Positions 3,091 to 49,430 of a stretch of DNA of 64,000 nt are shown here, in pieces; positions within the stretch are counted from its first letter, which is position 1; each line of letters starts with the position of its first letter. Under the pieces are notes generated by a model. It worked only from the letters and a program-made list of their open reading frames with translations. It was not told where the DNA came from and did no database searches. Location of the stretch: the NCBI GenBank assembly GCA_965644295.1, contig CBFFRP010000119.1, forward strand, positions 62,001 through 126,000, read 5' to 3'. Made by a program: the position numbers and the translations under genes. The DNA is from Paraphysomonas bandaiensis (Eukaryota; Protista; Chrysophyceae).

Positions 3091-3521
3091 AGAAAGAGCC
3101 AAATGTTATAATGAGGAACTTATCGATTATTGCATTAATATTATCGTAACCTGAGATGCAGTGTGTGGAGTGTTGGTTTAGTAGATACAGCCAGACTTTA
3201 AACAGACAGCTACTGCCTGCTGTATTTGAACAAGTGTTAGAGCTGCATGTACAGAGTAGACCTGTACAATACATCAAGATACATACATTCCTACATACAG
3301 CAGTACAGCAGAGTACAAAGGAGGAGTACCTACAGCAATACTCTGTACAGAGCAGTATACGCCGTGTATTCCGTGCGTCAGTGGAGAAGAAAATGTGAAT
3401 GTTCTTTTGCTGGTGTCTGTATATCTGCACCAGATATGCTGCAGTATTTGTGTGCATTGCAGGTACAGGATATGTGACGCTAACATAGTACAGATCTTGC
3501 GACCAGGAGTTACTGATATTA

Positions 3522-5005: not shown

Positions 5006-5410
5006 GTGGTTTCACTTATTCTGATCAGTGAATTTTAACTGTGTTCGGAAGGATAGTGCTGGTAGAATTATATGAAGAGTACATTACTAAAACAATTTGT
5101 ACATTATAAAAGAAAATCTTTTCGGGTCATGTAGTCATTAGTCATAATCACTACTCACGCACTATATATTCTAGACGGTTTTTAGTCTTGCATTTATAAA
5201 AGTCATTGTTCCTGAAATATCTAAAATTTTAAAACTTGAATGGTAATGAAATCCTCAATAGATCTGGGCAAGAGTGGTGTGTAGTACATAATAGATAATA
5301 GAAGTGTATCGTCTATATAGTGAGAAAAACGGAATAAAGTCACTATCCGATATCTCATCACACAATTTAGCTCACTGTATTAGTAGTACACCGTGAAAAA
5401 GCGGACATCT

Positions 5411-29066: not shown

Positions 29067-29419
29067 TGTTAGAATTGGACATTTCACAGAAGTTAACTTT
29101 GCTCTACACTTAAACCTTAATCTTGCTATGTTGAACACAATGCATTTTCAAGTAAGAAATTATAATTATTATTCTGAACACTTCACTACATATTCGTGTA
29201 ACATATATATGTTGAAACATCTGTTCTCAGCAACATCTGTTTATCACATGTTCATCAGTCAATTCTATATCTTGTATAGTCACACATCAGTAACTGATTT
29301 TAATTCCTTTGTACCACCTATAATCACCCGTTACACCTATGCGTTGACTTCACCTATTGTACACTATTAACTCACTTCAATTGCACAATATATATCACAT
29401 CATATTGCAGAACTCAACA
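29067..29419 (-). mobile_element. Solo LTR, diverged relative of the Copia-3 LTR
   Basis: TGTTAG...CTCAACA, colinear with 30347-30698 with many substitutions; flanks GTCCT / GATCG give no TSD. Confidence 0.85.
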
Positions 29420-31805
29420 GATCGGGCAGTCCATCATCGATGCACTGTCTTTTTGCGTCCACAAGTGCTTGTTGAAGCAAAAAGGAACAGCAGCAGTTTG
29501 AGGCATCATCGTGAGGTTAATTCTTATCGCAAGTGTGTCATGAATGATAATCAAACTGCTTAAATTGATGCTGTCATCCTCATACAAATATGCTTTTCTT
29601 ATAATCTGTAACAGAATGCCAGTCTAAACAGTCAAAAAGCAAGTGCCAGTAAAATGATCACCATATCCGCCCAAACTATAACACTAAACTATCGCTGTGC
29701 AGTATACGGTCCAAACTATTCGGCCGTCATCTCTTTCATATTTATTACTGATCAGGCGAAGAAACCGTTGTTTGCTACTATTACTTTGATTCACCATCTC
29801 TGCTCATGATGAGTTTGATGGATTCATTCCTCTGATTTCATTGTTTCATTAAGTAAACATTTTTTGTAAACGTGGAAATTTTGCAAAGTTTTAGGAAAAA
29901 CTTGGGGATTTTACAGTATTCATGTAGAAGCGTTTATGTACGACCGTAGTGTTATTGTTAAGCAACGAAAAATACCAGTGTGTAACAGAAGTTGACATTA
30001 TTTATTTGCTAAGGTTTGCTATTTTCAATTGAAAAGATGAAATTATAAACACTACATTCATGATAAACAAAACCGAAGTTGTATTCGATTTACAACTCTA
30101 TAGTGTACAAACCACACACTCACCAACTTCTACTTCAGTTTCATACTACACAATATAATGTACTAATTACATATATATATATATCTTTTGATTTTTATAT
30201 CTAATACTGCACTCAATTGCATATATTATAGAATCTTCAGATCTCAACAGTGTGGTGTGGCACATACAGAGTATGTTTTAAACGAAGCAAATAATAAATC
30301 TTTTTCCCTGTCACAGATTCCCACCTCTCCGTAGCTCCGTAGATGCTGTTAACAATGGACATTTCACTGAAGTTAACTTTGCTCTACGCGTAAACCGTAA
30401 CCTTGCTGTTGAACACAATGCACTTTCAAGTAAGAAATTATGATTATTATTCTGAACACTTCACTACATATTCGTGTAACATATGTTGAAACATCTGTTC
30501 TTATAGCAACATCTGTTTATCATATGTTCATCAGTCAGTTCTATATCTTGTATAGTCACACATCAGTAACTGAATTTAATTCCTTTGTAACTACTATAAT
30601 CACCCGTTACACCTATGAGTTGACTTTACCTATAATTGCACACTGTTAACTCACTTCAATTGCACAATATATATCACATCATATTGCAGAACTCAACACT
30701 CCCACTCAATTGGATGTAGTTAACCATTCTAAAATTTGTGAAGAACATTGCTATCGGATACGCAACCACCGAACCTCATAGGACACTGGTGGACGTATGA
30801 CTCCGCTGGTATATAGCTAGCTCCCACCATTCATTCACCTCTATCTAGTTACGACGAACTCTCTTTTACTCCTACTCCTCAAGAACATCACAACACCCTG
30901 CAACGTCATCACTGCCCACAGAAACGTGTTTATTCTATAAACTGAATACACACAGCAACCTAGGAGCAACGTATAACCGCATACTAATAGTACACCACAT
31001 CCTACGTTTTACTTTCTACCTAAATTCCCTTACAAAAACAATATACCGCCACTTTGGTGCATTTTAGCATTCAAGAACCCAAAATCCCTAATATCCAGGT
31101 TAATACGTAAATACAACCCTGCATACCAGGTATTGCATATCACAATTGATTCCCCACTGAGCCTGGTATGAACACTCGTGCACCTCGAGTATATAAAATC
31201 CATTCTCCGTTGATGTGATATGTACTTGCCCCCCTATAGGGTAGTATGGGTAATGCCAGTACGTATTCCTATGGAAGTATACACTGCAACTGCTACACTG
31301 GAATACTGACCCACATAACTTTATTATAAATTTGTGGCAGGTTTCACATTGCGTGAAGTCACCATCAGCAGATCATAGTGTACATCATCATCGGCAGATA
31401 AAGTGGACATCACACCTGAACGTTGATTCCGTGTGTAGGTACATCATAGCTCATTACCCCATCTTAATGAGTATAACATAGAATATGCATCCTAGACATG
31501 GTATAGGGTCCTGATGATATAATGTTCTTGATATAGATTCCTAAACAAATATCACAGGGTCCTGAATGGGCAATGCATGCAGTTTTGGTACTATAGCCAC
31601 GTAGATAGGGCATAGGAAATGCCACGTGGTCACACTGCCTCCCCCCCTCGTTTTTGTGAGAAATCCATGGTCGCACACATGTCAATGGGACTAGGTTTGA
31701 AATAGCCATCAATACGAACCACCATGGAGTATTATTATCATATTATAGATGTAATTCGGAGAATACTTAAAAATTTCACATCGTAAATTGTAGAGTAGGA
31801 ACACT

Positions 31806-34800
31806 TTATACCGACTGATTAACTTGTGGAAATTTGCTGGCAAATTCCTCGTCTACCAAGACCATTGTAGAAGAATCAAATTCTTTATGGGCAAAACAAT
31901 GGATATGGTAATTATCAAGTCGGAAAGTTTGTTTAGTCATCACATTTTTAGTTGAGAGTATCCGTTTGGAACTTTTATGATACCAATGTGTGAAGACAAA
32001 ACGTGCAACATAAGTAATAAAATGAGAGTCCGGTAACTCCAGGCTTTCATACCACAGGTCCCCGAAAACTCTTAAGTCAACATAAGCCTCATCACCTGGC
32101 TGAAAACTAGTGATAGGCTGCTTACGGATTTTTGCAATATATTCCTTTGCCTCTTTAACCGGATAAATAAGATGATATAAATATCTTTTCCTAGAACAGA
32201 AATCGGCATATGGAATAGAGTCAAAAATATCCTTACTGAATGGAATGTCACGAACATCACCATCCTGAAATTTCACAGTAAAAACTAGAGAGGTTCTGGT
32301 GTCTCTATCACCTCTGTAGTATAGAATTGTGTCAATCACATGCTGTTCATGGTCTCTACAAGCCATGTTATACGCTGTGTCTTGATCACCCGCAAAAAGT
32401 TTAACCTCCCGCACATCGACTTTCACAACTTGTCCTGTCACCAAATGTCTGCAATCAATGTCATTTTTATATTGAGATATGACTTTGAAAGGACCCATAT
32501 AACGGTGAGACATCTTAGGATGGACTTTAGCACCCTTGTCAAACAAAACAAGATCTCCCGGCTGATATCTGTTCTGCTTGTCGGCCGGTATACCTTGGCT
32601 AGCCCGCTCTTGCACAAGACGCTGTTGATAAGCATGCGAAGCTGCCCTGAGCTCACGTAGGTTATCATTAAAACGTTTAAGTCGTGCATGCGCATCCTGG
32701 GAAACAGAGTCGGTGTCCACGTTAAAATAACGCTTATCCTCCGATCCAAAAGTCAACTCGAATGGTGAGAATCCCGTCTCAGATGACACTTCAGAGTTAA
32801 GAATGTGTTGGACACTGGCGATCCAGCTAGGATCTTCAAACACATCTGTGCGCTCTTGACGCTCGCTAGCATCATATACTAGAGCTCGTAGGTGACGAAC
32901 TACCTCACCTATGGTACGTTCTGAGCCATTCGCATGCCGGTTGGCTATACTAAACGTATGGCGCATTCCCATGTATTCCGTTAGCTGCTGGAATAGATCC
33001 GAAGTTAAATCCGGACCCTGGTCTGAAATCACGACGTCAGTGTGACCGTAATAGGACCAATACTTCCAAACAGTATTCGCTAAATTCAAAGCCGTTACTC
33101 CTTTAACTGGTTCCAGAAAAACGAGCTTTGTGTGGAGGTTCACTATCACATTGATATGCGTGTAACCGTCCTTGCCATGTGGAGTAATCTCCACTGCATC
33201 AATAGGTGGTTTTAGGTTGCGCACTATGGGAATAAGTGCTTCCTTCATGGCTAACCGGGTTTTCACGCAAGTTGGACAGTTGGATATATATTCTGCTACC
33301 ACCTGATATGGTATTCCATGCCCTGGAAAACGTTTATTGAGACGAATCCAAGTAGCTTTCCCTCCAAGATGACCCACGCGAGAGTTGTGTACCTCACGCA
33401 AGCATTCTTCACGAGATATATTCATGGAAGGTTGTTCTTGGTCACTGAGATCCAACGGGTCCATAAAATTTCCTAGGAATGAGAAATACTCAGAATCCTG
33501 ACAGTCCTCTCCCAGAAAATAGGCATCATCCCACATAGAATCATCCAAGAACATGCCCGACAAATAGGCCAGTTGGTGTTCCCTGGATAACCAGTCTGCT
33601 AACCAATTCTGTGCTCCAGAAATATGTCGGATTTTAAAATTGAATGATTGCAAGAATATTCTCCATCTAACAATTTTTGGTACCTCTGACGCTTCCATCC
33701 AGAGCAAATTGTTATGGTCTGTTTCTATTGTAAACTGCTTTCCAACTAAGTAATACGCTAGCTGTTTAACCGAATAGTAGATACCGTAGCCCTCCTGCTC
33801 TATAGTAGCCCATTTCATTGCTTGCTCTGAAAACTTTTTAGAGATAAAGGCAATAGGTTGCAATTGAGCTTCTCCTGACGGTAATACCTTCCGTTGTAGT
33901 AGTACAGAACCTATACCTAGCTCACTTGCATCAGTCCGTAAAATCCACTCTAACTCATAATCAGGGTAGAAGAGCTCACACGCATCTTGTAAACCTTTTA
34001 TGAAACGTTTGTACTCAGCTTCATAATCATGACGCCAAGTAGATTTATTCCAATTGAAAGATTTCTTAGTGAGGTCCGTTAAATGACCTACTAAGTCAGA
34101 ATACTTTGGCGTGAAGCTGGAAAAGAAAACTCCCTTGCCTAGCAGAGATCTAGCTTGTTTAGTCGATGATGGCATGGGTATGTTTGCCAAGGCTTCCTTT
34201 TTATCCGGACACACTTCATACGATTTGTGTTTGCACACATATCCAAAAAAATTAACTTTCTTAAAACCAAGCCAGCTCTTAGCCATTTTCAACTTTATGT
34301 TTCTCTCCAGACATCTGTCAATAACTCGTTCCAACTTTTCATAAGCATCCTGGGGATCGTTGGCTAGTATTAGCATATTATCAAAGATAACGATAGCCCA
34401 GTCTGAAAAGTCGGCAAATATCTCCCGAACAACCTCTTGCAGAACACCAGTAGCAGGAGCTATACCCTCTGGCATGAAATTAGGTGCAAACTGTCCCCAT
34501 GGCGTTTGAATGGACAATTTCTCGGAAGTTTCCTCATCTAAAGGTATTTGATGAAACGCATTTGTAAGATCTATATCCAAATAATATGGAAAATTAATGA
34601 TCTTGTCAAGTTCATGTTTGACATTGGGAATAGTGTAGTTTCCCACATGCATGTGATCATTTATCTTAACGTAATCCCCACAAAATCGAATATAAGGAGG
34701 TGTAGCCTTGGGCGCTACTACAAGACAAGAAGCCCATGGCGATCTACTCTTCCGGTAAAAATACCCACACAAACGACGAAATTCTTTCTCTGAGGCTTCC

Positions 34801-35774
34801 CATAGTTTTGGATTAATAGGCCTCGCCTTGGGTTTGATCCGATCCGGAAGTGTATCTTTCCACTTAATTTTTAAAGGTTCAACACCTTTTACACCAGACC
34901 ACTCATCTGGTACAAAGACTTTAACCGCTTTAGTTCGTAGGAGATGCATCACATTTGTTTGTTCCTTCATCTCGCTACTAACATGGGTCTCCAACAACTG
35001 TTCATAGTCTTTTAAAGCTTCCGCTCTAGTCTTTCCTAAGAATACCAAAGCTTCTTTAAATTGAACCGGCAATTCGGAATCCTCTTCTTCCGGTGCAATT
35101 TGAGTACTCGCTTTAGACCATGGTTCCACTATTTGTCCATGCTCTAAACCAGACAAATCATCATGAGTCGAAATCTTCTTGGCATCTGTTTCTATCTCAT
35201 AAGATGTTTGTTCAAAAGCATGCCTCATCAGTTCACACATAAAGGGATATAAAGTACCAGTAAGTGCCGGCAATCCAAGTATGACATCATTATGTTTCAT
35301 GTCAATAATTAGGAAATCCCCTTTGAACTGATACTGTTTTCCATAAGGGTCAGCCAACAAAAGATTGAGTCTGACTCCTTGTGTGACTGTTTTTATAGTA
35401 GTACTATCCGCCAATACTACTCTATGATTCGCATCGTATAAAAATTCGGGGTTTAGCTCTGGCATTAAACTCTCAACCAGACCCCTAGACACATAGTTGG
35501 CTGAAAGCGCTCCCGTATCGCAAAGTACGGTGATCAATTTTTCCGAATTCTCTCTCAAATTATTGTTCATTATTAGCTTAGCTACAGTATGTGCTGATGT
35601 CATTTTTCGCGTATTAGGAAAGCAAGCATACAGCTTAGCTTGCCCCTCGGTTTGCACAGAACACAATGCCGCCGTGAATGTAGACTCTTCAAATTGTAAG
35701 CAACAATCGTCATCCCCGTCACACCCATTAACTACACTGACATCCTGCGCTCCCCGCACGCAATGGTCCTTCCA
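31806..35774 (-). CDS. Gypsy-A pol (PR-RT-RH-IN-chromo-like)
   Basis: LCDTGA protease; RFCGDY, DLTNAFHQI, IFDN RT; TDASELGIG/ETDH RNase H; HHCC and SDQG integrase; chromo-like HVIDTILYYRG..FTVKFQDG. Confidence 0.93.
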   Translation of the reverse strand, partial: WKDHCVRGAQDVSVVNGCDGDDDCCLQFEESTFTAALCSVQTEGQAKLYACFPNTRKMTSAHTVAKLIMNNNLRENSEKLITVLCDTGALSANYVSRGLVESLMPELNPEFLYDANHRVVLADSTTIKTVTQGVRLNLLLADPYGKQYQFKGDFLIIDMKHNDVILGLPALTGTLYPFMCELMRHAFEQTSYEIETDAKKISTHDDLSGLEHGQIVEPWSKASTQIAPEEEDSELPVQFKEALVFLGKTRAEALKDYEQLLETHVSSEMKEQTNVMHLLRTKAVKVFVPDEWSGVKGVEPLKIKWKDTLPDRIKPKARPINPKLWEASEKEFRRLCGYFYRKSRSPWASCLVVAPKATPPYIRFCGDYVKINDHMHVGNYTIPNVKHELDKIINFPYYLDIDLTNAFHQIPLDEETSEKLSIQTPWGQFAPNFMPEGIAPATGVLQEVVREIFADFSDWAIVIFDNMLILANDPQDAYEKLERVIDRCLERNIKLKMAKSWLGFKKVNFFGYVCKHKSYEVCPDKKEALANIPMPSSTKQARSLLGKGVFFSSFTPKYSDLVGHLTDLTKKSFNWNKSTWRHDYEAEYKRFIKGLQDACELFYPDYELEWILRTDASELGIGSVLLQRKVLPSGEAQLQPIAFISKKFSEQAMKWATIEQEGYGIYYSVKQLAYYLVGKQFTIETDHNNLLWMEASEVPKIVRWRIFLQSFNFKIRHISGAQNWLADWLSREHQLAYLSGMFLDDSMWDDAYFLGEDCQDSEYFSFLGNFMDPLDLSDQEQPSMNISREECLREVHNSRVGHLGGKATWIRLNKRFPGHGIPYQVVAEYISNCPTCVKTRLAMKEALIPIVRNLKPPIDAVEITPHGKDGYTHINVIVNLHTKLVFLEPVKGVTALNLANTVWKYWSYYGHTDVVISDQGPDLTSDLFQQLTEYMGMRHTFSIANRHANGSERTIGEVVRHLRALVYDASERQERTDVFEDPSWIASVQHILNSEVSSETGFSPFELTFGSEDKRYFNVDTDSVSQDAHARLKRFNDNLRELRAASHAYQQRLVQERASQGIPADKQNRYQPGDLVLFDKGAKVHPKMSHRYMGPFKVISQYKNDIDCRHLVTGQVVKVDVREVKLFAGDQDTAYNMACRDHEQHVIDTILYYRGDRDTRTSLVFTVKFQDGDVRDIPFSKDIFDSIPYADFCSRKRYLYHLIYPVKEAKEYIAKIRKQPITSFQPGDEAYVDLRVFGDLWYESLELPDSHFITYVARFVFTHWYHKSSKRILSTKNVMTKQTFRLDNYHIHCFAHKEFDSSTMVLVDEEFASKFPQVNQSV

Positions 35775-38700
35775 TCAAGGTCGGGAATCACCGAAGCGAT
35801 CCCTTCTCAAGATAGAAGTTGGATTGGATCTACCAGTGGAACCATCCTCAGCTTTCAGGAAAGCATTGAGCTTATCCCTCATCTCAACAGCCGAGGTTCT
35901 CAAGCACTGAGAATTGTGGTTGTATTTGCACTGTGGCTTGTTGCATTTCCCGTACAACATCTGCCTCAGGCAACCGAATTTCTCAACTCTCGAACTCGTA
36001 TCACCAGCAGGTTTATCCTGAGAAGAAGCCATAAAAGAAACCTCTTGCTCATTAACAACTGCTGTGGGATCAGGTTCCAGATCCTGCGATGATGTAACGT
36101 CCTTGGCTGAGCCACGACGTAAATCAATGTTACCCTCTTCATCATCTGAAGAACTAGGGTATTCGAGATTTATCTGCTCCGGACCTCGATCAAAATCCGA
36201 ATCATCAGAAACATATCCATCAATGTGAGTGAGAGCATGTGAATCTCTGTTATTCCGATGATCATAGTCCTTGTAAGAAGTAGACCGCATCGGAGACGGA
36301 TGTTTCTCATTATTCTTGGAAAACAAATCCCTTTTCCGTTTGTTGTACTCATCAAGTTTGTTTTTAGCCTCAATGTTAGCCTCAAACGGTAACTGACGAG
36401 CTGCTAAGCAAATCTGATAATGATCTACTAAAATAGCCGTAAATTCATCGAAGAACTCGTTCATCGTGTCAAACTGTAGTTTATTCATGCACCCAAAGAC
36501 ATAACGAACATAATCCCTATCGTTCAAGTTTTTGAATAGTCTTACGAGCCCATATTCTTTGTCATCTACTCTTGGACACCAATCCTTATTAAACTCCAAC
36601 ATAATGGATAACATGGTTCGAAACAAATCAATAAGTTTCAACTGTTGGAAGTAAAACTGTTCGAACGTGACAGTTGTCACTTTCCTCCACTCCATAATCT
36701 TTATGTGTCTAAGAGAATCTCGTAGCTCCTCATAGAATCCCACACAATTAAAAACCCGAGTTTCTTTGGCTATTACACGCAGTAAGTCGGACAAATCCAT
36801 CTCTGAAATCTCCGCATGACCGAGATGATATACTTCTCTTAGATGATCTCTTAATTCTCCAGAAACAACCTTTTGTAGACGCACAGTGGTCTGTTCCTCT
36901 TCTTGAAAATCCAAGATTTGTTTGACAGCTCTAGCCACTTTAGAAAGCTTAAGTTCATTGATACGAATATAACAACACCCGGTTTGATAACCAGGGTGTT
37001 GGCTCGTAAACAATAAAACTACAATAACACCTACACTGAACCAACAAAGAACAGTAATAACGGTATTATTATTAAAACACTTTTCCAAGTCTAGACCTAA
37101 ACTTAGTTAGTGACTCCCGCAAAGAGCCACCGCGCAATGGTATACCGCCGGCACCCAAGATCACTAGCACCAAGCTTTGGTCTAACTTAAAACAAGTGAT
37201 AAACACCATAGAAGCATATATGCACACACACACACTCCTAACATGGTACAACACACGTGGTGTCATCACACCACCACAGGTTGCGTAACTCTTCAATCAA
37301 AACTGAAAAATACACAGCAACCTGATAGGGAGTGACTCACCAGCATATGCCGAGAGTACACCGTATACTACGTATCTATACCCTACCAGAGACTGAAAAC
37401 CCCCTAATCCAGGAAATACATAAATACGGTACGTATAGTACGTATAGTACGCACACCACATTTGCAATCGAACCCCAATAAGCCTTGCATAAACACTCGT
37501 GCACCTCAAGTGTACAATAGCGACTTCTCTCTTATGATGGTCACATGTACTTGCCCCCCTATAGGGTAGTACGGGTAATACATGTATGTATGTATATGGA
37601 AGTATATACTGCAACTGCTATACAGGAATACGGGCCCACATAACTTTGATATAAATTTGCAGCAGGTTTCACATCGACCGAAGTCACCAGCAGCAGATCA
37701 TAGTCGTACATCATCATCAGCAGATAAAATTGGACATCATACCCGAACGTTGGCTCAATATGTAGGTACACTGTGGTACATTACCAATGTCCAAATGGTG
37801 TTGCATAATATGTATCCTGAACACAATGAAGGTCCTAAAGCAATATATAGGGTCCTGATATAGGGTCCTAAACCAACATAGGGTCCTAAAAGTCAATGTA
37901 ACCATGCATGTGACTCAATAGCGTGATACTATAGCCACGTAGATAGGGCATGGGAAATGCCACGTGGTCACACTGCCTCCTCCCCCGTTTTGGTTGTCTA
38001 CAGAATAGCATGCCTCCGGTATTCACAAATGCCAACGGGACTAGGTGTTACGTAGCCGTCAAAACGAAAATCCCCGGAGAATTATAAGTTATATAATAAT
38101 AATTTGATATGGAATAGAATTGAGAGAGCAATAAGAATAATATGTGTCTAGCGTGGAACTTAATAAGACGCACGGACCTGAGGATATTTGTTGGCAAAAT
38201 CCTCGTCCACGAGTACCATTGTGCTAGCATTCACCTCGGAATGAACAAAGCAATGCACTAGGTAATTATCATAACGGTAGGTACGGAGAGTGAGAAGATC
38301 CTTCACCGATAAAACCCGCTTAGAGCTCTTGTGATACCAGTGTGTGAACTGGATAGGAGCTACATAAGTAATGAGATGAGAATCTGGTAATTCCAACTCA
38401 TCGTACCAAGCATCACCATAAATTCGCAAATCAACATAGGCTAGATCACCAGGTTGAAACTGAGTGATCGGTTGCCGGCGGAAATCCGCGATGTATTTCT
38501 TTGCATAGTCAGCAGTATAAATAAGATGGTAAAGATATCGTTTTCGAGAACAAAATTCAGCATAAGGAACAGAATCAAAAATATCCTTGCTGTAAGGAAC
38601 TTCTCGGACATCTCCATCTTGAAAACGCACAGTGAAAACCATGGTAGATCGAACCTCTCTATCACCACGATAATAAAGAATTTCATCAATAACATGTTGA

Positions 38701-41700
38701 TCCTGATCGCGTAAAGCCATTTTATAAGCAGTATCAGAATCTCCCGGAAACAATTTAACATCGCTCACGGAAACACGAACCACTTGCCCAGTGGCGAGAT
38801 GTTGACAATCTACGTCATTCTTGTATTGGGACTTGACTGAGAAAGGTCCCATATACCGGTGAGACATCTTAGGATGAACCTTTGCCCCTTTGTCAAATAA
38901 GACAAAATCTCCCGGTTGATACCTATTCTGTCTATCGGGATGCACACCTGTTCCTGCCCTCTCCGTGGCTAACTTTTGCTGATAAGCTTTGGAAGCCTCT
39001 CGGAGTTGGGCTAACTGATCATTAAGCGCAGTGAGTCGAGCATGCGCCCGATCTGGAAGGTCTTTGAGATCCATGTTCAAATAGTCAAGATCCTTTGAGC
39101 CAAACGTCAACTCAAAAGGCGAAAATCCTGTTTCCGAAGACACTTCAGAATTTAGAAGATATTGAACACTTGCTAACCAACTAGGGTCCTCAAAGATGTC
39201 TTTTCGTTCCTCCCGTTCACTGTAATCATAGACCAGAGCACGTAGATGTCGAACTACTTCTCCAATAATTCTTTCACATCCATTTGCATGGCGATTGGCA
39301 ATACTAAAAGTGTGCCGAACACCCATGTACTCCGTCAACTGTTTGAACAAATCTGAAGTCAAATCCGGTCCTTGATCCGAGATTATTAGATCGGTGTGAC
39401 CGTAATGACTCCAGTATTTCCATATAGTATTTGCAAGATTAAGAGCCGTCACACCTTTGACAGGTTCAAGGTACACAAACTTGGTGAAAAGATTGACCAC
39501 CACGTTGATATGTGTATATCCCTCTGCACCGTGAGGTGTAATCTCAACAGCATCTATACCAATCGCGCTACGAGCATTTGGGGGCTTGAGATTTCGTACG
39601 ATCGGAATAAGAGCCTCCTTCATAGCCAACCTCGTTTTCACACAATTTGGGCACTTAGAGATATAATCCTCAACAACCTTGTAAGGAATATTATGACCCG
39701 GGAACTCTTTGTTTAAGCGTATCCAGGTAGCCCTTCCCCCCATGTGTCCAACTCGCGCGTTATGAACCTCACGCAACGCCGTCTCCGGTGATACATGAGA
39801 TGTTGGAGGGTCCCCAATCTCTCGATCATCCGGGTTCATAAAGTTACCCAGAAAGTTAAAGTACTCATACTCATTACAGTCATCCCCCATGAAATAGGCG
39901 TCATCATATTCCTCCTCTGGGAATATTCCAGAGAGTATAGCAACCTGATGCTCTCTAGATAACCAGTCCGCCAACCAATTCTTGGCACCAGATATATGAC
40001 GAATGCTGAAGTTGAAAGACTGCAAGAATATCCTCCATCGTGTAATCTTTGGAACATCCGAAGATTCCATCCACAATAAATTGTTATGGTCGGTCTCAAT
40101 TGTGAATTGCTTGCCTATTAAGTAATAAGCCAAGTGTTTAACACTGTAGAAAATTCCATATGCCTCTTGCTCTATAGTTGACCACTTCTGAGCTTGGGCA
40201 GAAAACTTTTTGGAAATGAAAGCTATAGGCTGCCACTGTATGCTCCCATCCTCTAATATTTTCTTTTGCAATAACACTGAACCTATTCCCAACTCACTAG
40301 CGTCAGTACGCAATGTCCACTCAAGATTATAATCCGGATAAAACAGCTCACAAGCGTCTTGTAGTCCAGCAATGAAACGACGATACTCTGCCTCGTAGTC
40401 ATGCCGCCATGTGGACTTATCCCAATTGAAACTCGACTTTGTCATGTCAGTCAAGTGAGCAACTAAATCAGAGTATCTAGGCGTAAAACTAGAAAAGAAT
40501 ACCCCTTTACCCAGCAACGATCTGGCCTGTTTGGTGTTAGTAGGCATTGGAATCTTGCCGAGAGCCTCCTTCTTATCGGGATTAACCTCATATGACTTGT
40601 GACGGCAAACATATCCAAAGAAATCCACCTTTCTAAACCCCAACCAGCTTTTTGGCATCTTAAGTTTCACATTCCTTTCAATACATCTGTCAATGATCTT
40701 CTCGAACTTCTCATAAGCATCCCTGGCATCATTAGCCAATATAAGCATGTTATCGAAAATGACTATGGCCCACTCAGAGAAATCATCGAATATTTCTCTC
40801 ACAGTTTCCTGTAAAACACCCGTGGCCGGAGCAATACCCTCTGGCATGAAATTAGGAGCAAATTGCCCCCAAGGCGTCTGAATTGATAGGCGCTCAGAAG
40901 TTTCATCATCTAATGGAATTTGATGAAAAGCATTTGTTAAATCTATATCCATGTATAGCGGAAAGTTGATAATCTTGTCCAACTCATGCTTAACATTAGG
41001 AATCGTATAATTTCCCACTTCCATGTGCTTGTTAATTTGCACATAGTCACCACAAAAACGGATGTATGGAGGAGTGGCTTTGGGAGCAACCACTAGGCAT
41101 GAAGCCCAAGGAGACCGACTCTTTCGGTAGAAATAGCCACACAGTCGCCGAAACTCCTTCTCCGAAGCCTCCCACAGCTTAGGATTGATCGGGCGAGCCT
41201 TTGGTTTCATTCGGTCCGGGAGAGTGCTTTTCCATTTTAGAGACAAAGGGTCCACACCTCTCACACCGCTCCATTCGTCAGGCACGAACACTTTTTCAGC
41301 CTTCGTTGACAACAATTCCATAATCTTAGTTTCACTTTTCATTTCATCGCTGACATGAGTCTCTATCTGCTCATGATAGTCTTGGAGGGCTTCCTCCCTA
41401 GACTTTCCTAAGAATGTCAACGCATCCTTGAATTGAACCGGTAACTCAGTTTCCTCATCCTCTGGGGCAATAGCATCACTCGCTCTTGACCATGGGTGCA
41501 CACGGTCATCAGAGTCAACCGTGTCCCCTGCCAGAGATGACAACACATTCGAATTTTCATTATCGGAGACACCCTCGATTTGAGTGTCATGTGCCTCACG
41601 CATAACAGCACACATGAAAGGATATAATTTCCCAGTCAGCGCAGGCAACCGAAGGCAACAGACAACAAGCCCAGAGAATCAAGCCCAAAGAAGCGTGTCG

Positions 41701-43398
41701 CAGTTAGTTTCTTATAAGAGTGTGAAACAACAGCGCAAAGACAGAAATTTCTGTACGAGCAGTAAAGTAAATATTTACTATAACAACACCCGGTTTGATA
41801 ACCAGGGTGTTGGCTCGTAAACAATAAAACTACAATAACACCTACACTGAACCAACAAAGAACAGTAATAACGGTATTATTATTAAAACACTTTTCCAAG
41901 TCTAGACCTAAACTTAGTTAGTGACTCCCGCAAAGAGCCACCGCGCAATGGTATACCGCCGGCACCCAAGATCACTAGCACCAAGCTTTGGTCTAACTTA
42001 AAACAAGTGATAAACACCATAGAAGCATATATGCACACACACACACTCCTAACATGGTACAACACACGTGGTGTCATCACACCACCACAGGTTGCGTAAC
42101 TCTTCAAAACTGAAAATACACAGCAACCTGATAGGGAGTGACTCACCAGCATATGCCGAGAGTACACCGTATACTACGTATCTATACCCTACCAGAGACT
42201 GAAAACCCCACAATCCAGGAAATACATAAATACGGTACGTATAGTACGTATAGTACGCATACCACATTTGCAATCGAACCCCAATAAGCCTTGCATAAAC
42301 ACTCGTGCACCTCAAGTGTATAATAGCGACTTCTCTCTTATGATGGTCACATGTACTTGCCCCCCTATAGGGTAGTACGGGTAATACATGTGTGTATGTA
42401 TATGGAAGTATATACTGCAACTGCTATACAGGAATACGGGCCCACATAACTTTGATATAAATTTGCAGCAGGTTTCACATCGACCGAAGTCACCAGCAGC
42501 AGATCCTAGTCGTACATCATCATCAGCAGATAAAATTGGACATCATACCCGAACGTTGGCTCAATATGTAGGTACCCTGTGGTACATTACCAATGTCCAA
42601 ATGGTGTTGCATAATATGTATCCTGAACACAATGAAGGTCCTAAAGCAATATATAGGGTCCTGATATAGGGTCCTAAACCAACATAGGGTCCTAAAAGTC
42701 AATGTAACCATGCATGTGACTCAATAGCGTGATACTATAGCCACGTAGATAGGGCATGGGAAATGCCACGTGGTCACACGAACTTTGCAAGTTCTTTCCT
42801 CACGCATTACAACAGTCTGTTGCACATTTGGAAGGTTGGCATTCTTTTTCAATTCCCTGAACAGCTTCCCAGGTTTCTTGCCTCCTAACAGAGCTTGAGT
42901 TCTAGTAGGGAATTCAGAAGCCACCTGCTGATCACCATCCTCCTCAGCATTACCATTTGACTGAGCAGTAGAAGTATCTTCCTCCTCCAACAATTCTCTT
43001 ACAGATTCATCCCGCCAAGGAGTGCGATAGTGCTCCGCCAGATTATGCAGAGTAGAGTATCTCCTTGTATCACGTTTCTTTACCGGTTTCGGTAACGTGT
43101 CAGGAACTGTAGGTGTTCCTTTCGTAACTGTTTCATCCGCCCCTGGGATATTTTGATCTTCCCTTAAAATCGTGGGGCTTTGCGCTCTAGAGCCGACAGG
43201 TGTACCTCTACGTGAGGCTCGCTCTTCGAGTCGCGTGACTCTCAACGTTAAGTCATCTATTCTCGTATCGAATTTCCTTTCCAAGGCATCGAAACGTGCA
43301 AGAATGATTTCGAGCATTGAAGGCTCTAGATCCTCCTTAACACTGCCTTCAGAACCAGAGTGGCTCTTAGGGCTACTCCTACCAACAGGAGTTTGCAT
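35775..43398 (-). CDS. Gypsy-A gag, split by Gypsy-B (43398-42779 + 36963-35775)
   Basis: Removing Gypsy-B and one CGAA copy restores the frame ..EERTCKVR|INELKLSK..; coiled-coil N-terminus; CCCH-type motif near the C-terminus. Confidence 0.85.
36968..42778 (-). mobile_element. Gypsy-B: sister-family element lacking gag and most of the protease, inserted in Gypsy-A gag
   Basis: LTRs 36968-37972 and 41779-42778; TSD CGAA (36964-36967, 42779-42782); PPT GGGGGAGGAGGCAG; the 5' leader joins directly to LPALTG at ~41648. Confidence 0.93.
38160..41648 (-). CDS. Gypsy-B truncated pol (RT-RH-IN-chromo-like), uninterrupted 1162 codons
   Basis: Colinear with Gypsy-A pol from LPALTG onward; same IFDN motif; intact integrase segment NARSAIGIDAV. 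Confidence 0.92.
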   Translation of the reverse strand: MPALTGKLYPFMCAVMREAHDTQIEGVSDNENSNVLSSLAGDTVDSDDRVHPWSRASDAIAPEDEETELPVQFKDALTFLGKSREEALQDYHEQIETHVSDEMKSETKIMELLSTKAEKVFVPDEWSGVRGVDPLSLKWKSTLPDRMKPKARPINPKLWEASEKEFRRLCGYFYRKSRSPWASCLVVAPKATPPYIRFCGDYVQINKHMEVGNYTIPNVKHELDKIINFPLYMDIDLTNAFHQIPLDDETSERLSIQTPWGQFAPNFMPEGIAPATGVLQETVREIFDDFSEWAIVIFDNMLILANDARDAYEKFEKIIDRCIERNVKLKMPKSWLGFRKVDFFGYVCRHKSYEVNPDKKEALGKIPMPTNTKQARSLLGKGVFFSSFTPRYSDLVAHLTDMTKSSFNWDKSTWRHDYEAEYRRFIAGLQDACELFYPDYNLEWTLRTDASELGIGSVLLQKKILEDGSIQWQPIAFISKKFSAQAQKWSTIEQEAYGIFYSVKHLAYYLIGKQFTIETDHNNLLWMESSDVPKITRWRIFLQSFNFSIRHISGAKNWLADWLSREHQVAILSGIFPEEEYDDAYFMGDDCNEYEYFNFLGNFMNPDDREIGDPPTSHVSPETALREVHNARVGHMGGRATWIRLNKEFPGHNIPYKVVEDYISKCPNCVKTRLAMKEALIPIVRNLKPPNARSAIGIDAVEITPHGAEGYTHINVVVNLFTKFVYLEPVKGVTALNLANTIWKYWSHYGHTDLIISDQGPDLTSDLFKQLTEYMGVRHTFSIANRHANGCERIIGEVVRHLRALVYDYSEREERKDIFEDPSWLASVQYLLNSEVSSETGFSPFELTFGSKDLDYLNMDLKDLPDRAHARLTALNDQLAQLREASKAYQQKLATERAGTGVHPDRQNRYQPGDFVLFDKGAKVHPKMSHRYMGPFSVKSQYKNDVDCQHLATGQVVRVSVSDVKLFPGDSDTAYKMALRDQDQHVIDEILYYRGDREVRSTMVFTVRFQDGDVREVPYSKDIFDSVPYAEFCSRKRYLYHLIYTADYAKKYIADFRRQPITQFQPGDLAYVDLRIYGDAWYDELELPDSHLITYVAPIQFTHWYHKSSKRVLSVKDLLTLRTYRYDNYLVHCFVHSEVNASTMVLVDEDFANKYPQVRASY

Positions 43399-44776
43399 CT
43401 TCCACCTTAGTTGCTGTTACACTCTTTAGTTTATATACCCACACGATTTTTCACCTCAGAGTTACGCAGCTCCCTTGGCTTCAGAGACTAACAAAGATCG
43501 ACAAGGAGGGAATTAAAAATTCGCTCACAGGTCTCAATGAAATAACTCAAATCCAGTCCCCAGTCCCCCGGAAGAAACTGACAAATCCACAGACCTGCGT
43601 AAGAATCCACCAAGACACCAAGACACCACTCAACACACTGACACAAGACACCCCTGCACAACGCACACAAGCAAGGCACACAGACAGGTCTATCTAAATG
43701 ATGTGTATCAAGAATTAATCACAAGAATTCTTGTGCGAGCAAATAAGTAAATATTTACTATGACGTAACCCGGTTTGATAACCAGAATCACGGCTCGCAG
43801 TACAGGTATAGCACACAAACACGCAAGTGTGAAAACAATGTATAATTAATTATGTTTTGACTGCTCTAGGAAAAACCTAATGCTCAGTAAATGATACCCG
43901 CCAAGTATCACCACGCAAGGAACACCGCCAGTGCAACAACATCGTTGGCACCAAGCACTTCGGTTAAGCCTAAACAAGTACATAACACCATAGCATACAT
44001 GTTACACCCACTCCTACTCCTCAAGAACATCACAACACCCTGCAACGTCATCACTGCCCACAGAAACGTGTTTATTCTATAAACTGAATACACACAGCAA
44101 CCTAGGAGCAACGTATAACCGCATACTAATAGTACACCACATCCTACGTTTTACTTTCTACCTAAATTCCCTTACAAAAACAATATACCGCCACTTTGGT
44201 GCATTTTAGCATTCAAGAACCCAAAATCCCTAATATCCAGGTTAATACGTAAATACAACCCTGCATACCAGGTATTGCATATCACAATTGATTCCCCACT
44301 GAGCCTGGTATGAACACTCGTGCACCTCGAGTATATAAAATCCATTCTCCGTTGATGTGATATGTACTTGCCCCCCTATAGGGTAGTATGGGTAATGCCA
44401 GTACGTATTCCTATGGAAGTATACACTGCAACTGCTACACTGGAATACTGACCCACATAACTTTATTATAAATTTGTGGCAGGTTTCACATTGCGTGAAG
44501 TCACCATCAGCAGATCATAGTGTACATCATCATCGGCAGATAAAGTGGACATCACACCTGAACGTTGATTCCGTGTGTAGGTACATCATAGCTCATTACC
44601 CCATCTTAATGAGTATAACATAGAATATGCATCCTAGACATGGTATAGGGTCCTGATGATATAATGTTCTTGATATAGGTTCCTAAACAAATATCACAGG
44701 GTCCTGAATGGGCAATGCATGCAGTTTTGGTACTATAGCCACGTAGATAGGGCATAGGAAATGCCACGTGGTCACA

Positions 44777-47553
44777 CTTTACCTTGGGTACCTCTGCGAT
44801 AATTTGTGCAGTAGTCTTAAATTTTTCCCCAAGATTTCGCTCCCTCTGTTCAATGAATATTGGACCACTCAAAGCCTTGGTATATATATCAGCCATCTGT
44901 TGTCGACTGCTCACATGAATTAATTTCGCTGTATTAAACTGTTCGGGATCCACATGCTCTCTAATCATATGATACTTAATCTCAATATGTTTCGATCGTT
45001 GATGTTGCACTGGATTTTCCGATATATCCTGAGCACTTTGACTATCCAGGAATAATGGTGTGGGCTCGTCAATTTTCAATCCTACTTCACCAGTCACCCC
45101 CCGAGACCATATCATTTCCTGTAATCCATTATATAAGCATTGATACTCTGCTTGCATAGTCGATGTAGCTACAGTAGACTGAAGTTTGGAACCCCACGAT
45201 AGTGGTCCACCAGCTCCAAACATAACATAACCTGAAGTTGATCTCCTCGTCAACGGGTCACCCGCCCAGTCAGCATCCGTGAACATATGAAGATCAAAAT
45301 CTTTCCCTCTATATTGAATGCCTTTTTCCGTAGTACCTCGTACATACTGCATTAAATGTATCATTAGTTTACATACAGTGATATTCACTTTCGTTGAGAA
45401 TCGTGACAATACTCCCACTGCATATGATATATCCGGCCTTGTATTCATAGATAAATAGAGTAACGCTCCTATTAGTGGACGATAGGGAAAATTGTCAACT
45501 AGTTCCTGCTCTTCAGTCGAATGCACATGTTCCACTCCCACTTTGATCCTATCCATGACATCACTAGGTAGTGGGTATCGCCGAGTCTTGTCCCTTGGAC
45601 CCAGAAAGTCCACATACTTCGCCAATACCTTTTTGATGTACACTGTCTGGTCAAGTTTGAGACAATTCTGAGTTCTCGTCACTCTCACGTTCAAAAACTG
45701 GCCAATCTCATTCATATCTGTAATATCGAACCTTTCACATATACTCGTCGCTTAATTTCCAAAATAATACTCGTATCTCGACATGCTATCAGCATATCAT
45801 CTACATATATTACTAACAGAACTACTAATTCACCCCTGATCCGTGTAAAATATAAACATGGGTCAAGTATACATGATATAAAATGTAAGGACTTATACCA
45901 TGACCGTGGTGAGCTTCGAAGACCATATAAACTTTTCTTCAGTTTAAAGCAATATCCTGGTGGCAATTTGAAATCTGGTGTTGCATACTTATACACACAT
46001 CTCCTTTTATATCTGCATATACAAGAATGCATTAGATACGTCGAGTTGATGCACCACCATATTCATAACAAACGCGATAGCTAATAGCAATCTTACTGTT
46101 ACCGCTTTTACCACTGGAGTATAATTGTTGGCTCTACCAACCTCATGGCCTCCGCATTCAAGTACCACAAGTCTTGCTTTCTATCGTGGAATCGCACCCT
46201 CCTTGTTGCGTTTCAAAGCAAAGACATACTCAGGATTCAAATTGCAGTGACACTGGGGTAGGGATGATGGGCTTAACTTCCATTACTTCCCTTCGTTCCA
46301 GTCTGTCACGCTCAGCCTGTCTTGCTGTCAATGGAGTGACTCTGGGGTAGGTATGGGCTTAACTTCCATTACTTCCCTTCGTTCCAGTTCGTCACATTCA
46401 GCCTGGCTGAACTCCATTGCTTCCGTTCCGGCAACTCCAAGGATTCGGAATATGTCTGAGGCACCTTAGGTCCCGCTGACGAGCACCAGATGGAATCTGC
46501 CTCCTCTAGTAGGCTGCACTCCACTTCGTCACACGAAGGTAATACGTGCTTCTCCCCTACTACTGACACATTCGTCACCACCCTTGGAGCCCTTGTGCGC
46601 CTGCCCCTAGTTGAGCGATCTGATGGAGCTTCCTCTCCCGGAGCACTTACGAAGTCAGAAGGGGATGGAACCGTCCCAGTCAACTGCTGTAATAAATGTC
46701 CGCTGGTCCCGTCGTCACGAGATCCAGAACTAGCAGATACTCTTGTCACAAGGTCTTCACTCATCCGCGATGATGTGAATAGGAGTCTTAACTTCCAGTT
46801 GCTCCTCACCACCTGACATCAGGGATCTATATCCCACAGTTAGACCTCTTTCCGAATCTATATTCGCGTGGTCTTGTTGTACAGTTGGCCGCCATCTTCA
46901 CATGGGTTTTGTCGATTAAGTAATCGAAGTCTCTAATATTTCGTTCCTGAGGATCCACAGCAACCATGGCCTCGTCCATTTCTCGATAATAATCAGCCGA
47001 TTTCTCGATAATAATCCGCCGATCTCTCAGGCACAGATTCATCGAATAAAACATGCACAGACGTAACTATAGTATCTCCAATCAATACTTGGTATCCCAT
47101 TTGCTCCTCTGGGAACCCTACAAAGTATCCAGTCTGTGCCTTTTCTTCCCAGTCTTTCCTGCGATCTGCCTTCGGGATGAGAACGTATGCCTTGCACCCC
47201 CATTTCCGTAACCAAGAAAAATCTGGCACCGTTCCTCCAGGAACACACTCGTAGGGTGACATCCACCCTCTATAGGTCTTTGTGGGTAATCTTCTAAGAA
47301 CCCAGCATGCATGTCTAAAGGCTTTCCACCACTCCGCTTTTGGCATACCCGATGACAATAAAAGTGATAATGTCATTTCTCCTAGTGTCCTGAATTTCCG
47401 TTCTGAAACACCGTTTAATTCTGGTGTCTCCCTAGTAGTGTAGGAGAATGTGGTTCCAAATTTTTGTAACAAGTATTCTTTGATTCGCCTGTCCATCAAC
47501 TCTGGTCCACCATCAGCATGGTACTGCTGTATCCTGTTCCACCCTGGGTATTT
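44777..47553 (-). pseudogene. Copia-3 left arm: integrase-RT-RNase H with frameshifts and small duplications; continues at 30866-30699
   Basis: QYHADGGPE, ELNGVSERKFRT, LKKSLYGLRSSP, YVDD, FTDADWAG, RSKHIEIKYH; local duplications at ~46247-46404 and ~46979-47022. Confidence 0.88.
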
Positions 47554-48802
47554 TGGTAGCGAGTGGTAGCACTGAAGATACGAAGGAGGACAACAAGGTG
47601 CTGAAGTTCGACAAGTATCAGGCGGAGGCGTCTGCTCAAAAAATTAGGATTCATTTGGAAATTAAGCGACGAGTATATGTGAAAGGTTCGATATTACAGA
47701 TATGAATGAGATTGGCCAGTTTTTGAACGTGAGAGTGACGAGAACTCAGAATTGTCTCAAACTTGACCAGACAGTGTACATCAAAAAGGTATTGGCGAAG
47801 TATGTGGACTTTCTGGGTCCAAGGGACAAGACTCGGCGATACCCACTACCTAGTGATGTCATGGATAGGATCAAAGTGGGAGTGGAACATGTGCATTCGA
47901 CTGAAGAGCAGGAACTAGTTGACAATTTTCCCTATCGTCCACTAATAGGAGCGTTACTCTATTTATCTATGAATACAAGGCCGGATATATCATATGCAGT
48001 GGGAGTATTGTCACGATTCTCAACGAAAGTGAATATCACTGTATGTAAACTAATGATACATTTAATGCAGTATGTACGAGGTACTACGGAAAAAGGCATT
48101 CAATATAGAGGGAAAGATTTTGATCTTCATATGTTCACGGATGCTGACTGGGCGGGTGACCCGTTGACGAGGAGATCAACTTCAGGTTATGTTATGTTTG
48201 GAGCTGGTGGACCACTATCGTGGGGTTCCAAACTTCAGTCTACTGTAGCTACATCGACTATGCAAGCAGAGTATCAATGCTTATATAATGGATTACAGGA
48301 AATGATATGGTCTCGGGGGGTGACTGGTGAAGTAGGATTGAAAATTGACGAGCCCACACCATTATTCCTGGATAGTCAAAGTGCTCAGGATATATCGGAA
48401 AATCCAGTGCAACATCAACGATCGAAACATATTGAGATTAAGTATCATATGATTAGAGAGCATGTGGATCCCGAACAGTTTAATACAGCGAAATTAATTC
48501 ATGTGAGCAGTCGACAACAGATGGCTGATATATATACCAAGGCTTTGAGTGGTCCAATATTCATTGAACAGAGGGAGCGAAATCTTGGGGAAAAATTTAA
48601 GACTACTGCACAAATTATCGCAGAGGTACCCAAGGTAAAGAGAGTTCGTCGTAACTAGATAGAGGTGAATGAATGGTGGGAGCTAGCTATACCAGCGGAG
48701 TCATACGTCCACCAGTGTCCTATGAGGTTCGGTGGTTGCGTATCCGATAGCAATGTTCTTCACAAATTTTAGAATGGTTAACTACATCCAATTGAGTGGG
48801 AG
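47554..48802 (+). pseudogene. Copia-3 right arm: PBS, start of gag, large deletion, RT C-terminus/RNase H, PPT
   Basis: TGGTAGCGAG at 47554-47563; gag-like STEDTKEDNKVLKFDK; from ~47654 it is the near-exact reverse complement of 45763-44777 + 30866-30699; ORF 47702-48658. Confidence 0.88.
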
Positions 48803-49154
48803 TGTTGAGTTCTGCAATATGATGTGATATATATTGTGCAATTGAAGTGAGTTAACAGTGTGCAATTATAGGTAAAGTCAACTCATAGGTGTAACGGGTG
48901 ATTATAGTAGTTACAAAGGAATTAAATTCAGTTACTGATGTGTGACTATACAAGATATAGAACTGACTGATGAACATATGATAAACAGATGTTGCTATAA
49001 GAACAGATGTTTCAACATATGTTACACGAATATGTAGTGAAGTGTTCAGAATAATAATCATAATTTCTTACTTGAAAGTGCATTGTGTTCAACAGCAAGG
49101 TTACGGTTTACGCGTAGAGCAAAGTTAACTTCAGTGAAATGTCCATTGTTAACA

Positions 49155-49430
49155 GATGCTGATATTGTTCAAAGCCCTACCTTCGATAAGGCCATCGTGA
49201 AGATTCAGAACGGAAACGAGGAATCTCTGACTCGTCAAGAGAGAGCAGCGGTTGCGAGCTTTCGAACGGATGCAGGAGAAGCTAAATCACTGGATAAGGC
49301 CGTCGAAGTGGAACGCTGCTGCTGCATTTGAAAGCCACAGAGCTACCAAGAAGTTACGACTACAGCTTGACACCCAGTATTGATCGACCACAAGCACATA
49401 TTCAGTACAACTAATGTTGTGGAGACACAC
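49155..49430 (+). pseudogene. hAT-like transposase remnant that was the Copia-3 target (left part ~30315-30346)
   Basis: Joining the flanks gives LRSSVDA|DIVQSPTFDKAIVKIQNGNEESLTRQERAAV, similar to the 28150 remnant; later HIFSTTNVVE. Confidence 0.55.

Follow-up and report, generated by a model that had tools for sequence, protein, structure and literature searches.

How does a retrotransposon whose chromosomal copies carry two direct LTRs come to be inserted with its LTRs facing in opposite directions? The question is raised by a Copia insertion at 30347-49154 of the window, the 64,000-nt stretch of Paraphysomonas bandaiensis contig CBFFRP010000119.1 that was analyzed and that contains 0 Ns. 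A direct 5-bp GATGC was read on both flanks (30342-30346 and 49155-49159); on the left it is followed by TGTTAACAATGG and on the right it is preceded by CCATTGTTAACA. BLAST against the LTRs of normal copies located a 352-bp LTR at each end of the insertion, on the minus strand at 30347-30698 and on the plus strand at 48803-49154, both with the U5 terminus outward; the left terminus, TGTTAACA, is the U5 end. The U3 start of the LTR (TGTTGAGT) is unlike this U5 end, which leaves no doubt that U5 faces outward on both sides. The PPT GAGTGGGAG (48794-48802 and its mirror at 30699-30707) and a C-terminal pol ORF (47702-48658, with its mirror at 44606-45715) precede each LTR. No further LTR copies were found inside the insertion, and a 5' LTR is hence absent. 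The termini, the PPT and RNase H end before each of them, the direct GATGC flanks and the missing 5' LTR are all as the sequence-only reading had described them.

In a paralogous locus on contig C297, the sequence runs uninterrupted across the insertion point with one GATGC. This continuous site was taken as the paralogous empty site, and the reconstructed allelic empty site is expected to read ..CTCCGTAGATGCTGATATTG..; it gave 0 matches in metagenome scans. A perfect 5-bp duplication, together with one U3 end and one U5 end, was found in 12/12 normal copies, and the probability of a chance match over 5 bp is 1/1024. Because the direct 5-bp duplication is typical of the family and the two flanks are adjacent in C297, a single integrase-type insertion is supported, as had been proposed. 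The right copy of the duplication is also present in the public sequencing runs, which are available as short Logan unitigs: one unitig of run X1 covers 49132-49243 with no mismatch, of which only 23 nt lie on the LTR side. The flanks had further been said to restore a continuous, transposase-like frame. Continuity is borne out by the paralog; the likeness to a transposase was rejected, since the frame across the empty site is open for 78 codons only and has no Pfam match.

The insertion is an aberrant product of a Ty1/copia family and not a standard member of it. In the full copy L024, ORF2 contains rve (residues 56-154), SH3_retrovirus (221-289) and RVT_2 (506-728) domains, that is, the Ty1/copia pol order of integrase before an RVT_2-type RT, and the left arm of the insertion retains SH3_retrovirus and RVT_2 fragments in the same order. 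In 16 normal copies the LTR end ..TGTTAACA is directly followed by the PBS TGGTAGCGAGTGG, which is complementary to the 3' end of initiator tRNA-Met, as is usual in Ty1/copia elements. Complementarity to the initiator tRNA-Met gene of the same genome (tRNA-Met(CAT) on contig C263, end ..CTATCACTCGCTA) extends over 12 perfect bases, or over 16 if one G-U pair is allowed; this gene was found with a looser pattern, a stricter one (10 matching bases per acceptor side) having given no match. The departure lies in the LTRs. Two direct LTRs are seen in 12 normal copies, whereas the duplication here encloses inverted LTRs with U5 outward on both sides. Inverted terminal repeats are the normal design of DIRS-type retroelements, which use a tyrosine recombinase and produce no target duplication. 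The insertion is like them in being a retroelement bounded by inverted repeats and unlike them in its DDE integrase core, its 5-bp duplication and its character as a one-off accident. TIR DNA transposons and mobile foldback elements occur as several copies that have the same inverted ends and are mobilized together. The junction between the arms of this insertion occurs once in the genome, with no second copy, and no other close U5-outward LTR pair was found among the 100 of 147 U5 ends listed; the earlier term "TIR-like element" therefore describes its shape and does not extend to mobility.

The two arms are identical over ~1510 bp (30346-30866 plus 44777-45771 versus 47646-49155), barring one TA: a private extra TA near 30812 gives (TA)3 in the left arm, against (TA)2 in the right arm and in 19 other copies. 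The left arm lies on the minus strand. Its PPT and 3' untranslated stretch (30699-30866, the mirror of 48637-48802) are followed by an A-type C-terminal part of pol (RT end and RNase H region, 44777-45898), which is the same as in the right arm up to 45771, and then by a block from the non-autonomous B subfamily (45952-46912). The remainder is A-type integrase core and SH3-like domain (46917-47553; Pfam SH3_retrovirus), and the arm ends inside the core. Identity of the B-type block is 99-100% with at least 24 B copies, against ~88% with A copies, and the block contains the 86-nt tandem repeat of its subfamily at 46267-46408; 190/190 informative sites within it are B, and the arm as a whole is recombinant between two subfamilies (A/B/A) that have their LTR and PBS in common. 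The segment 47400-47560 is 100% identical to ~15 A copies, and a 22-nt tandem duplication private to this insertion lies in the A-type integrase segment at 46978-46999. Neither this duplication nor the A/B/A joints were found in any other copy of the assembly. Such a clean recombinant with a private duplication fits a particle that held several templates and in which switching was frequent.

The right arm lies on the plus strand. After the PBS it retains the first ~100 nt that follow the LTR in normal copies (47570-47654, A-type), where they belong to the N-terminal coding region of gag; in L024 the gag ORF begins inside U5. A 3.7-kb internal deletion, with its joint near 47654 and only ~1 nt of exact overlap, connects this sequence directly to the RT C-terminus, the RNase H region, the 3' untranslated stretch and the PPT (47655-48802). 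No parent carrying the A/B/A mosaic or the 3.7-kb deletion was found in the assembly. The left arm alone is interrupted by a 13.9-kb Gypsy nest, which is separate from the Copia event: Gypsy A (30867-44776, minus strand; LTRs of 767 bp with 1 mismatch, flanked by a 4-bp CTTT duplication at 30863-30866 and 44777-44780) contains Gypsy B (LTRs at ~36968-37973 and 41779-42779, 1006 bp, 98.8% identity). The restriction of this nest to one arm, together with the TA difference, indicates that the arms are two physically distinct sequences.

The inner join of the arms coincides with the LTR/PBS boundary of the right arm. At this position the PBS (47554-47569, plus strand) is preceded by reverse-strand integrase sequence instead of an LTR end, and it is the only LTR-less PBS in the 62.5-Mb genome, compared with 16 that follow an LTR end. 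Its first seven bases, TGGTAGC (47554-47560; GCTACCA on the other strand), are common to the PBS start and the integrase site, and the crossover lies somewhere within them. The arms had been reported to meet exactly at 47553/47554; the PBS start does abut integrase sequence, and the single point has to be replaced by the shared 7-nt tract. The junction falls at residue 114 of ORF2, within the rve core. In the full 5466-bp copy, GCTACCA is the sole sense-strand match of at least 7 nt to the minus-strand 3' end, and it is longer than the CCA microhomology that had been guessed. This uniqueness supports the view that the minus-strand 3' end mis-paired within the integrase region, and does so more strongly than the first guess. 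A tRNA-primed plus strand was considered as the source of the join and rejected, because upstream of the 12-nt match the sequence agrees with the PBS and leader of the element and not with the tRNA. The junction 29-mer had 0 matches in metagenome scans, and exact look-up of the 52-aa ORF across the junction returned no record.

We propose, with a probability of about one half, that the locus arose when integrase inserted, in a single event, an aberrant Ty1/copia cDNA that had obtained U5 at both ends by mis-priming on a second cDNA. The anatomy of the arms leads us to infer the following order of events, template molecule and extending polymerase. Synthesis of minus strand 1 would have left its template in the RT region and resumed at the gag start, skipping ~3.7 kb, and then reached the template end, giving a 3' end consisting of the PBS complement (..CTCGCTACCA-3'). 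Having received no plus-strand strong-stop DNA, this end may have paired with the 7-nt look-alike TGGTAGC in the integrase core region of the minus-strand DNA of a second cDNA in the same particle. Extension would then have copied the second strand via RT, RNase H, PPT and LTR to its U5 end. Mutual priming is conceivable if the growing 3' end of the second strand stood at the look-alike site, as in normal second strand transfer. The predicted product is a linear duplex, U5...IN/PBS...U5, which integrase would have inserted with the usual 5-bp duplication of the family. Both a second minus strand and the same strand are conceivable as the template, and either reverse transcriptase or a host enzyme may have extended the join. 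The fully specified version, in which two minus-strand cDNAs in one Copia particle primed each other via the 7-nt PBS mimic and integrase inserted the U5-U5 duplex normally, is put forward tentatively, at slightly less than even odds.

The near-perfect agreement of the arms over 1.5 kb counts against the use of two strands: such agreement would be expected had one arm served as the template for the other, and two independent minus strands would need near-identical RNAs. The same mis-pairing might instead have taken place within one molecule, with a complete minus strand folding back so that its PBS-complement end primed at its own integrase site and copied itself. The complementary strand would then be made and the duplex integrated, and the 3.7-kb deletion in the right arm would follow, either during second-strand synthesis or after integration, e.g., by slippage that shortened the long inverted repeat. 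A single minus strand made from an A plus B RNA pair would suffice for this, the same 7-nt site would be used, and identity over ~1510 bp but for a TA slip in the copied (left) arm is what copying predicts. The right arm has no integrase target site, however, so the strand ending in the PBS complement could not, in its present form, have been its own template; an extra, unexplained deletion with a joint overlap of ~1 nt is required. A snap-back molecule also has one duplex end, and further full-length priming would be needed to provide integrase with two. Self-copying by one strand seems unlikely to us. We are more doubtful that two incomplete cDNAs had their U5 ends joined to the target by integrase while host microhomology-mediated end joining sealed their inner ends, one cDNA having ended at the PBS for lack of plus-strand transfer and the other having broken in the integrase region, with the 7-nt match used for sealing. 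The same anatomy is predicted (U5/U5 ends, 5-bp duplication and 7-nt microhomology), and retroviral integrases can pair the ends of two donor molecules in vitro. Against this, the break must coincide with the one 7-nt PBS look-alike that the element contains, and two cDNAs must have shared one intasome in vivo, for which we know of no documented case.

An inverted structure in a highly repetitive region, where many copies are 100% identical across hundreds of bases, could also reflect a chimeric read or a mis-join in the assembly. Position 47554 has no independent read support in Logan unitigs or metagenome scans: no unitig bridging it was found among the matches listed for the public runs, and the unitig gaps at 46834-47376 in three runs are uninformative. 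The join itself speaks against an artefact, as it overlaps by only 7 nt and is asymmetric; with 16/60 positions symmetric, it is not a palindrome center, and a read-level fold-back chimera was rejected on this ground. Both outer junctions lead from flank to U5, with the same 5 bp duplicated on either side, and the paralog is uninterrupted at this site; an inverted structure is therefore required whatever the internal assembly. The run X1 unitig over the right outer junction and the differences between the arms (the nested 13.9-kb insertion and the TA) point the same way, and we consider misassembly very improbable. Least credible is a change after integration, whether by two opposed insertions at the same 5 bp followed by deletion between TGGTAGC repeats, or by a DNA-level inverted duplication that took the place of a normal copy's 5' LTR. 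Young insertions are nested in this region, and in a two-insertion arrangement TGGTAGC would be a direct repeat on the plus strand, making the deletion formally possible. Such histories require that the same 5 bp was hit twice independently, or that one breakpoint fell exactly at the LTR terminus beside the duplication and another exactly at the LTR/PBS boundary. They are also opposed by the essentially identical arms and by the continuity of the paralog, which shows that no host DNA was lost or gained.

Several known systems share elements of the proposed mis-priming on a second cDNA. Retroviral integrases perform two-ended integration of U5/U5 donors in vitro; the likeness is that integrase takes two copies of the same LTR end, and in contrast to the test-tube substrate, this locus would show a Ty1/copia integrase doing so naturally in vivo. 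The template-switch complexes of Sabot and Schulman are aberrant cDNAs composed from multiple templates and inserted as a unit with one target-site duplication round the whole, features that are matched here by GATGC, the C297 site and the A/B/A mosaic. Those complexes join two elements, fused from two parents, that share an LTR, whereas here the arms are inverted, there is no internal LTR and no 5' LTR, and the switch would be from a minus-strand 3' end onto minus-strand DNA. In HIV-1 defective proviruses, aberrant or premature second (plus-) strand transfer leads to internal deletions or tRNA inserts (PMC12657518). The error likewise concerns the PBS-guided transfer step and leaves PBS-defined junctions; it differs in that the PBS complement would here have paired with a 7-nt minus-strand mimic, leaving one arm inverted and U5 at both ends. 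For Ty1 and plant Copia elements, PMC7197481, referring to Garfinkel et al. 2006, describes autointegration into deletion and inversion circles, a process that also makes inverted Copia-type cDNA segments inside the particle. Such circles connect an LTR terminus with an internal target. An autointegration inversion product, in which the internal target would be duplicated, was rejected for this locus, since no LTR terminus lies at the inner joint and the PBS meets the integrase region through 7 shared bases; the joint shows homology and no duplication, and the product sits in the chromosome between duplicated host DNA. A literature search covering few subscription journals, and thus weak evidence of novelty, found no precedent for inverted Ty1 dimers or inverted-LTR insertions.

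Collectively, the data suggest a single immobile oddity with no sign of function or mobility, and apparently a rare case in which nature has recorded an error of replication whose product integrase still accepted. The locus would preserve a failure of the final strand transfer in reverse transcription, with nearly all informative bases intact, including the unique 7-nt look-alike, the PBS end, the recombination joints, the slippage marks and the target duplication. If the proposed origin is true, plus-strand transfer would have a hitherto undescribed mode of failure, in which a short internal mimic can capture the PBS-complement end of minus-strand DNA. Copia integrase would have carried out concerted insertion with two U5 ends in the cell, and no U3 end would be needed in vivo. 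A search rule for other genomes follows from the anatomy: a PBS with no preceding LTR, or U5-outward LTR pairs that share a duplication. Long near-perfect inverted repeats are known sources of hairpin RNA and chromosome fragility, and LTR retrotransposons would be able to make such repeats in chromosomes, at kilobase scale, in one step.

The insertion, an aberrant Ty1/copia element (30347-49154), is bounded by two 352-bp Copia LTRs identified by BLAST against full copies in the same genome, the left one in reverse (30347-30698) and the right one in forward orientation (48803-49154). The Copia LTR starts at U3 with TGTTGAGT and ends at U5 with TGTTAACA. The insertion terminates on either side in TGTTAACA with GATGC alongside, in agreement with the sequence-only reading that its ends are U5 termini of the same LTR in opposite orientation. 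Upstream of each LTR lie a polypurine tract (PPT; GAGTGGGAG) and the C-terminal ORF of pol. No third Copia LTR was found inside the insertion, which therefore lacks a 5' LTR, as had been claimed, and hence a promoter reading inward. A repeat search within the window gave two inverted matches of 100%, 30346-30866 with 48637-49155 and 44777-45771 with 47646-48640; reverse-complementing the two left segments in succession gives the right arm (47646-49155). Between these segments sits a 13.9-kb nested element, Gypsy (A) (30867-44776), flanked by a 4-bp CTTT duplication, with 767-bp LTRs that have 1 mismatch between them. It encloses a second element, Gypsy (B) (36968-42779), whose LTRs are more diverged than those of the enclosing element (98.8% over 1006 bp, 3 gaps); this could reflect transposition of the whole composite or homogenisation of the Gypsy (A) LTRs.

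All 12 normal copies compared (A-type copies of 5.3-5.5 kb and derivatives of 4.1-5.0 kb) end in U3 on one side and in U5 on the other, within a perfect 5-bp duplication, so the paired GATGC is the integrase signature of the Copia family. Both flanks consist of repeat sequence that has many paralogs in the genome. In the paralog on contig C297 the left and right flanks, whose adjacency had been in question, directly adjoin each other, and the reconstructed empty site can be aligned with C297 through the insertion point. GATGC is single there, and relative to the paralog host DNA was neither lost nor gained; a search for an allelic empty site found none. The sole difference from C297 at the empty site is an 8-bp tandem duplication (CTCCGTAG CTCCGTAG; 30327-30342) adjoining the target-site duplication, which could be an older difference or a repair by-product of the insertion. 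A ~270-bp stretch of the flank (29983-30249), with at least 40 genome copies at ~75% identity, is absent from the C297 paralog and is therefore probably a small non-autonomous element. Further out, 1.28 kb upstream of the left LTR and in the same orientation, lies a solo-like LTR of 352 bp from another subfamily (29067-29419; end ..AATTCTAACA), with flanks GTCCT and GATCG that are not a duplication. Adjoining the right flank is a 611-aa ORF on the minus strand (50448-52283) with no Pfam family.

In 16 genome copies the LTR end is followed by the 19-mer TGGTAGCGAGTGGTAGCAC of the primer-binding site (PBS). The window is the only place where this 19-mer has another preceding sequence, namely integrase core in reverse orientation. 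At the integrase site normal copies read ..CAGGCTACCA and then AAATACCCAGGG.., and the window minus strand at the joint reads ..CACTCGCTACCA and then AAATACCCAGGG... The tract GCTACCA (47554-47560) is common to the PBS start and the integrase site, so the crossover lies somewhere inside it. In L024, a full A-type copy, the site is at nt 2267 (residue 114 of ORF2, within the Pfam rve core, 56-154). It is the sole sense-strand match of at least 7 nt there to the 3' end of the complete minus strand, a microhomology larger than the CCA that had been proposed; such a 7-mer is present at all in only 15% of shuffled elements. Judged by base pairing, the PBS is genuine: the 3' end of a tRNA-Met(CAT) gene (G000:C263:427651-427724, minus strand; L062 92-165), followed by a T-run terminator, pairs with it over 12 perfect bases, or 16 with one G-U pair. 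At its 3' end the mature primer tRNA therefore likewise reads GCTACCA. The A1-U72 of the gene, its anticodon stem (GGG/CCC) and its T-loop (AUCGAAA) are initiator hallmarks. L024 itself (3219-8684; G000:C80) has two long ORFs of 533 and 1012 aa with a 7-nt overlap; the first begins within U5, so that the PBS is coding sequence, an arrangement also found in Ty1.

The right arm begins with the PBS and ~100 nt of A-type gag start, joined directly to the RT C-terminus and, after it, the RNase H region, PPT and LTR; ~3.7 kb of internal sequence is absent, and the deletion joint near 47654 has ~1 nt of exact overlap within 6/9 similar bases. The left arm, from the integrase site through the LTR, is a clean A/B/A mosaic of the two Copia subfamilies, which have LTR and PBS in common. 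An A-type block (47560 to 46917; 100% identity to ~15 copies over 47400-47560) is followed by a B-type block (46912 to 45952; 99-100% identity to at least 24 copies of the 4.2-kb non-autonomous subfamily, including its 86-nt tandem repeat) and by A-type sequence from 45898 onward. Neither mosaic joint, nor the deletion joint, nor a 22-nt duplication (46978-46999) occurs in any other assembly copy. The arms differ only in a TA repeat (three units left vs two right), and two units are found in 19 other copies. The B subfamily (L036-L040, e.g. G000:C358:168834-173024) comprises at least 24 near-identical copies of 4.17-4.19 kb with perfect 5-bp duplications, a 1.3-kb 5' internal region unlike that of A and no long ORF.

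During reverse transcription, minus-strand DNA terminates at the PBS, and its 3' end normally anneals to the PBS sequence carried by plus-strand strong-stop DNA. The Copia minus-strand 3' end is ..CTCGCTACCA, and minus-strand DNA of the integrase region contains a 7-nt mimic of the PBS, TGGTAGC. If the 3' end annealed to this mimic and was extended, the product would be the PBS complement, then the integrase sense strand with RT, RNase H, PPT and U3-R-U5, exactly the strand observed. Were the partner a second, still-growing minus strand with its 3' end at the mimic, extension would be mutual and would give a full duplex with U5 at each end in a single step. Intermolecular mis-priming between two minus strands is rated most likely (probability about 0.5), because there is no integrase site on the strand that terminates in the PBS complement.

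A minus strand that folded back and primed on itself would account for the TA slip and for how nearly identical the arms are, but would call for an additional priming step and a subsequent deletion; this route is rated unlikely. Host end-joining of two incomplete cDNAs in one intasome, decidedly improbable, would by sequence have the same outcome as mis-priming. Rearrangement after integration, for which breakpoints would have to coincide with both the LTR terminus and the LTR/PBS boundary, is rated the least probable origin. Autointegration was excluded because its joints carry LTR termini (PMC7197481). An assembly artefact would fit the finding that none of the unitig matches listed from the public sequencing runs bridges 47554, but is very improbable: Ns are absent from the window, the joint lacks symmetry (16/60 positions), the 13.9-kb nest and one TA distinguish the arms, and both flank-to-U5 junctions demand an internal inversion however the interior was assembled. 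One unitig from run X1 spans 49132-49243 without mismatch, with only 23 nt in the LTR.

Across the genome searched (62.5 Mb, 669 contigs), the insertion is a singleton by the context of the PBS 19-mer and by U5-end pairs among 100 listed of 147; being a singleton without a 5' LTR, it shows no signs of mobility. Sequence of the window is present in marine and seawater metagenome runs, and the nearest pol relatives come from metagenomes and, at 42% identity, from a Paraphysomonas transcriptome. The host is probably a marine protist. A literature search of incomplete coverage found no earlier case of an element whose arms are inverted so that each end is U5. Near concepts are complex elements that arise by template switching and integrate as one unit (PMC1950507) and aberrant second-strand transfer in HIV-1 (PMC12657518), although inverted arms with dual U5 ends are not described in the accessible parts of either paper. 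The insertion is classed as an aberrant LTR-retrotransposon cDNA.
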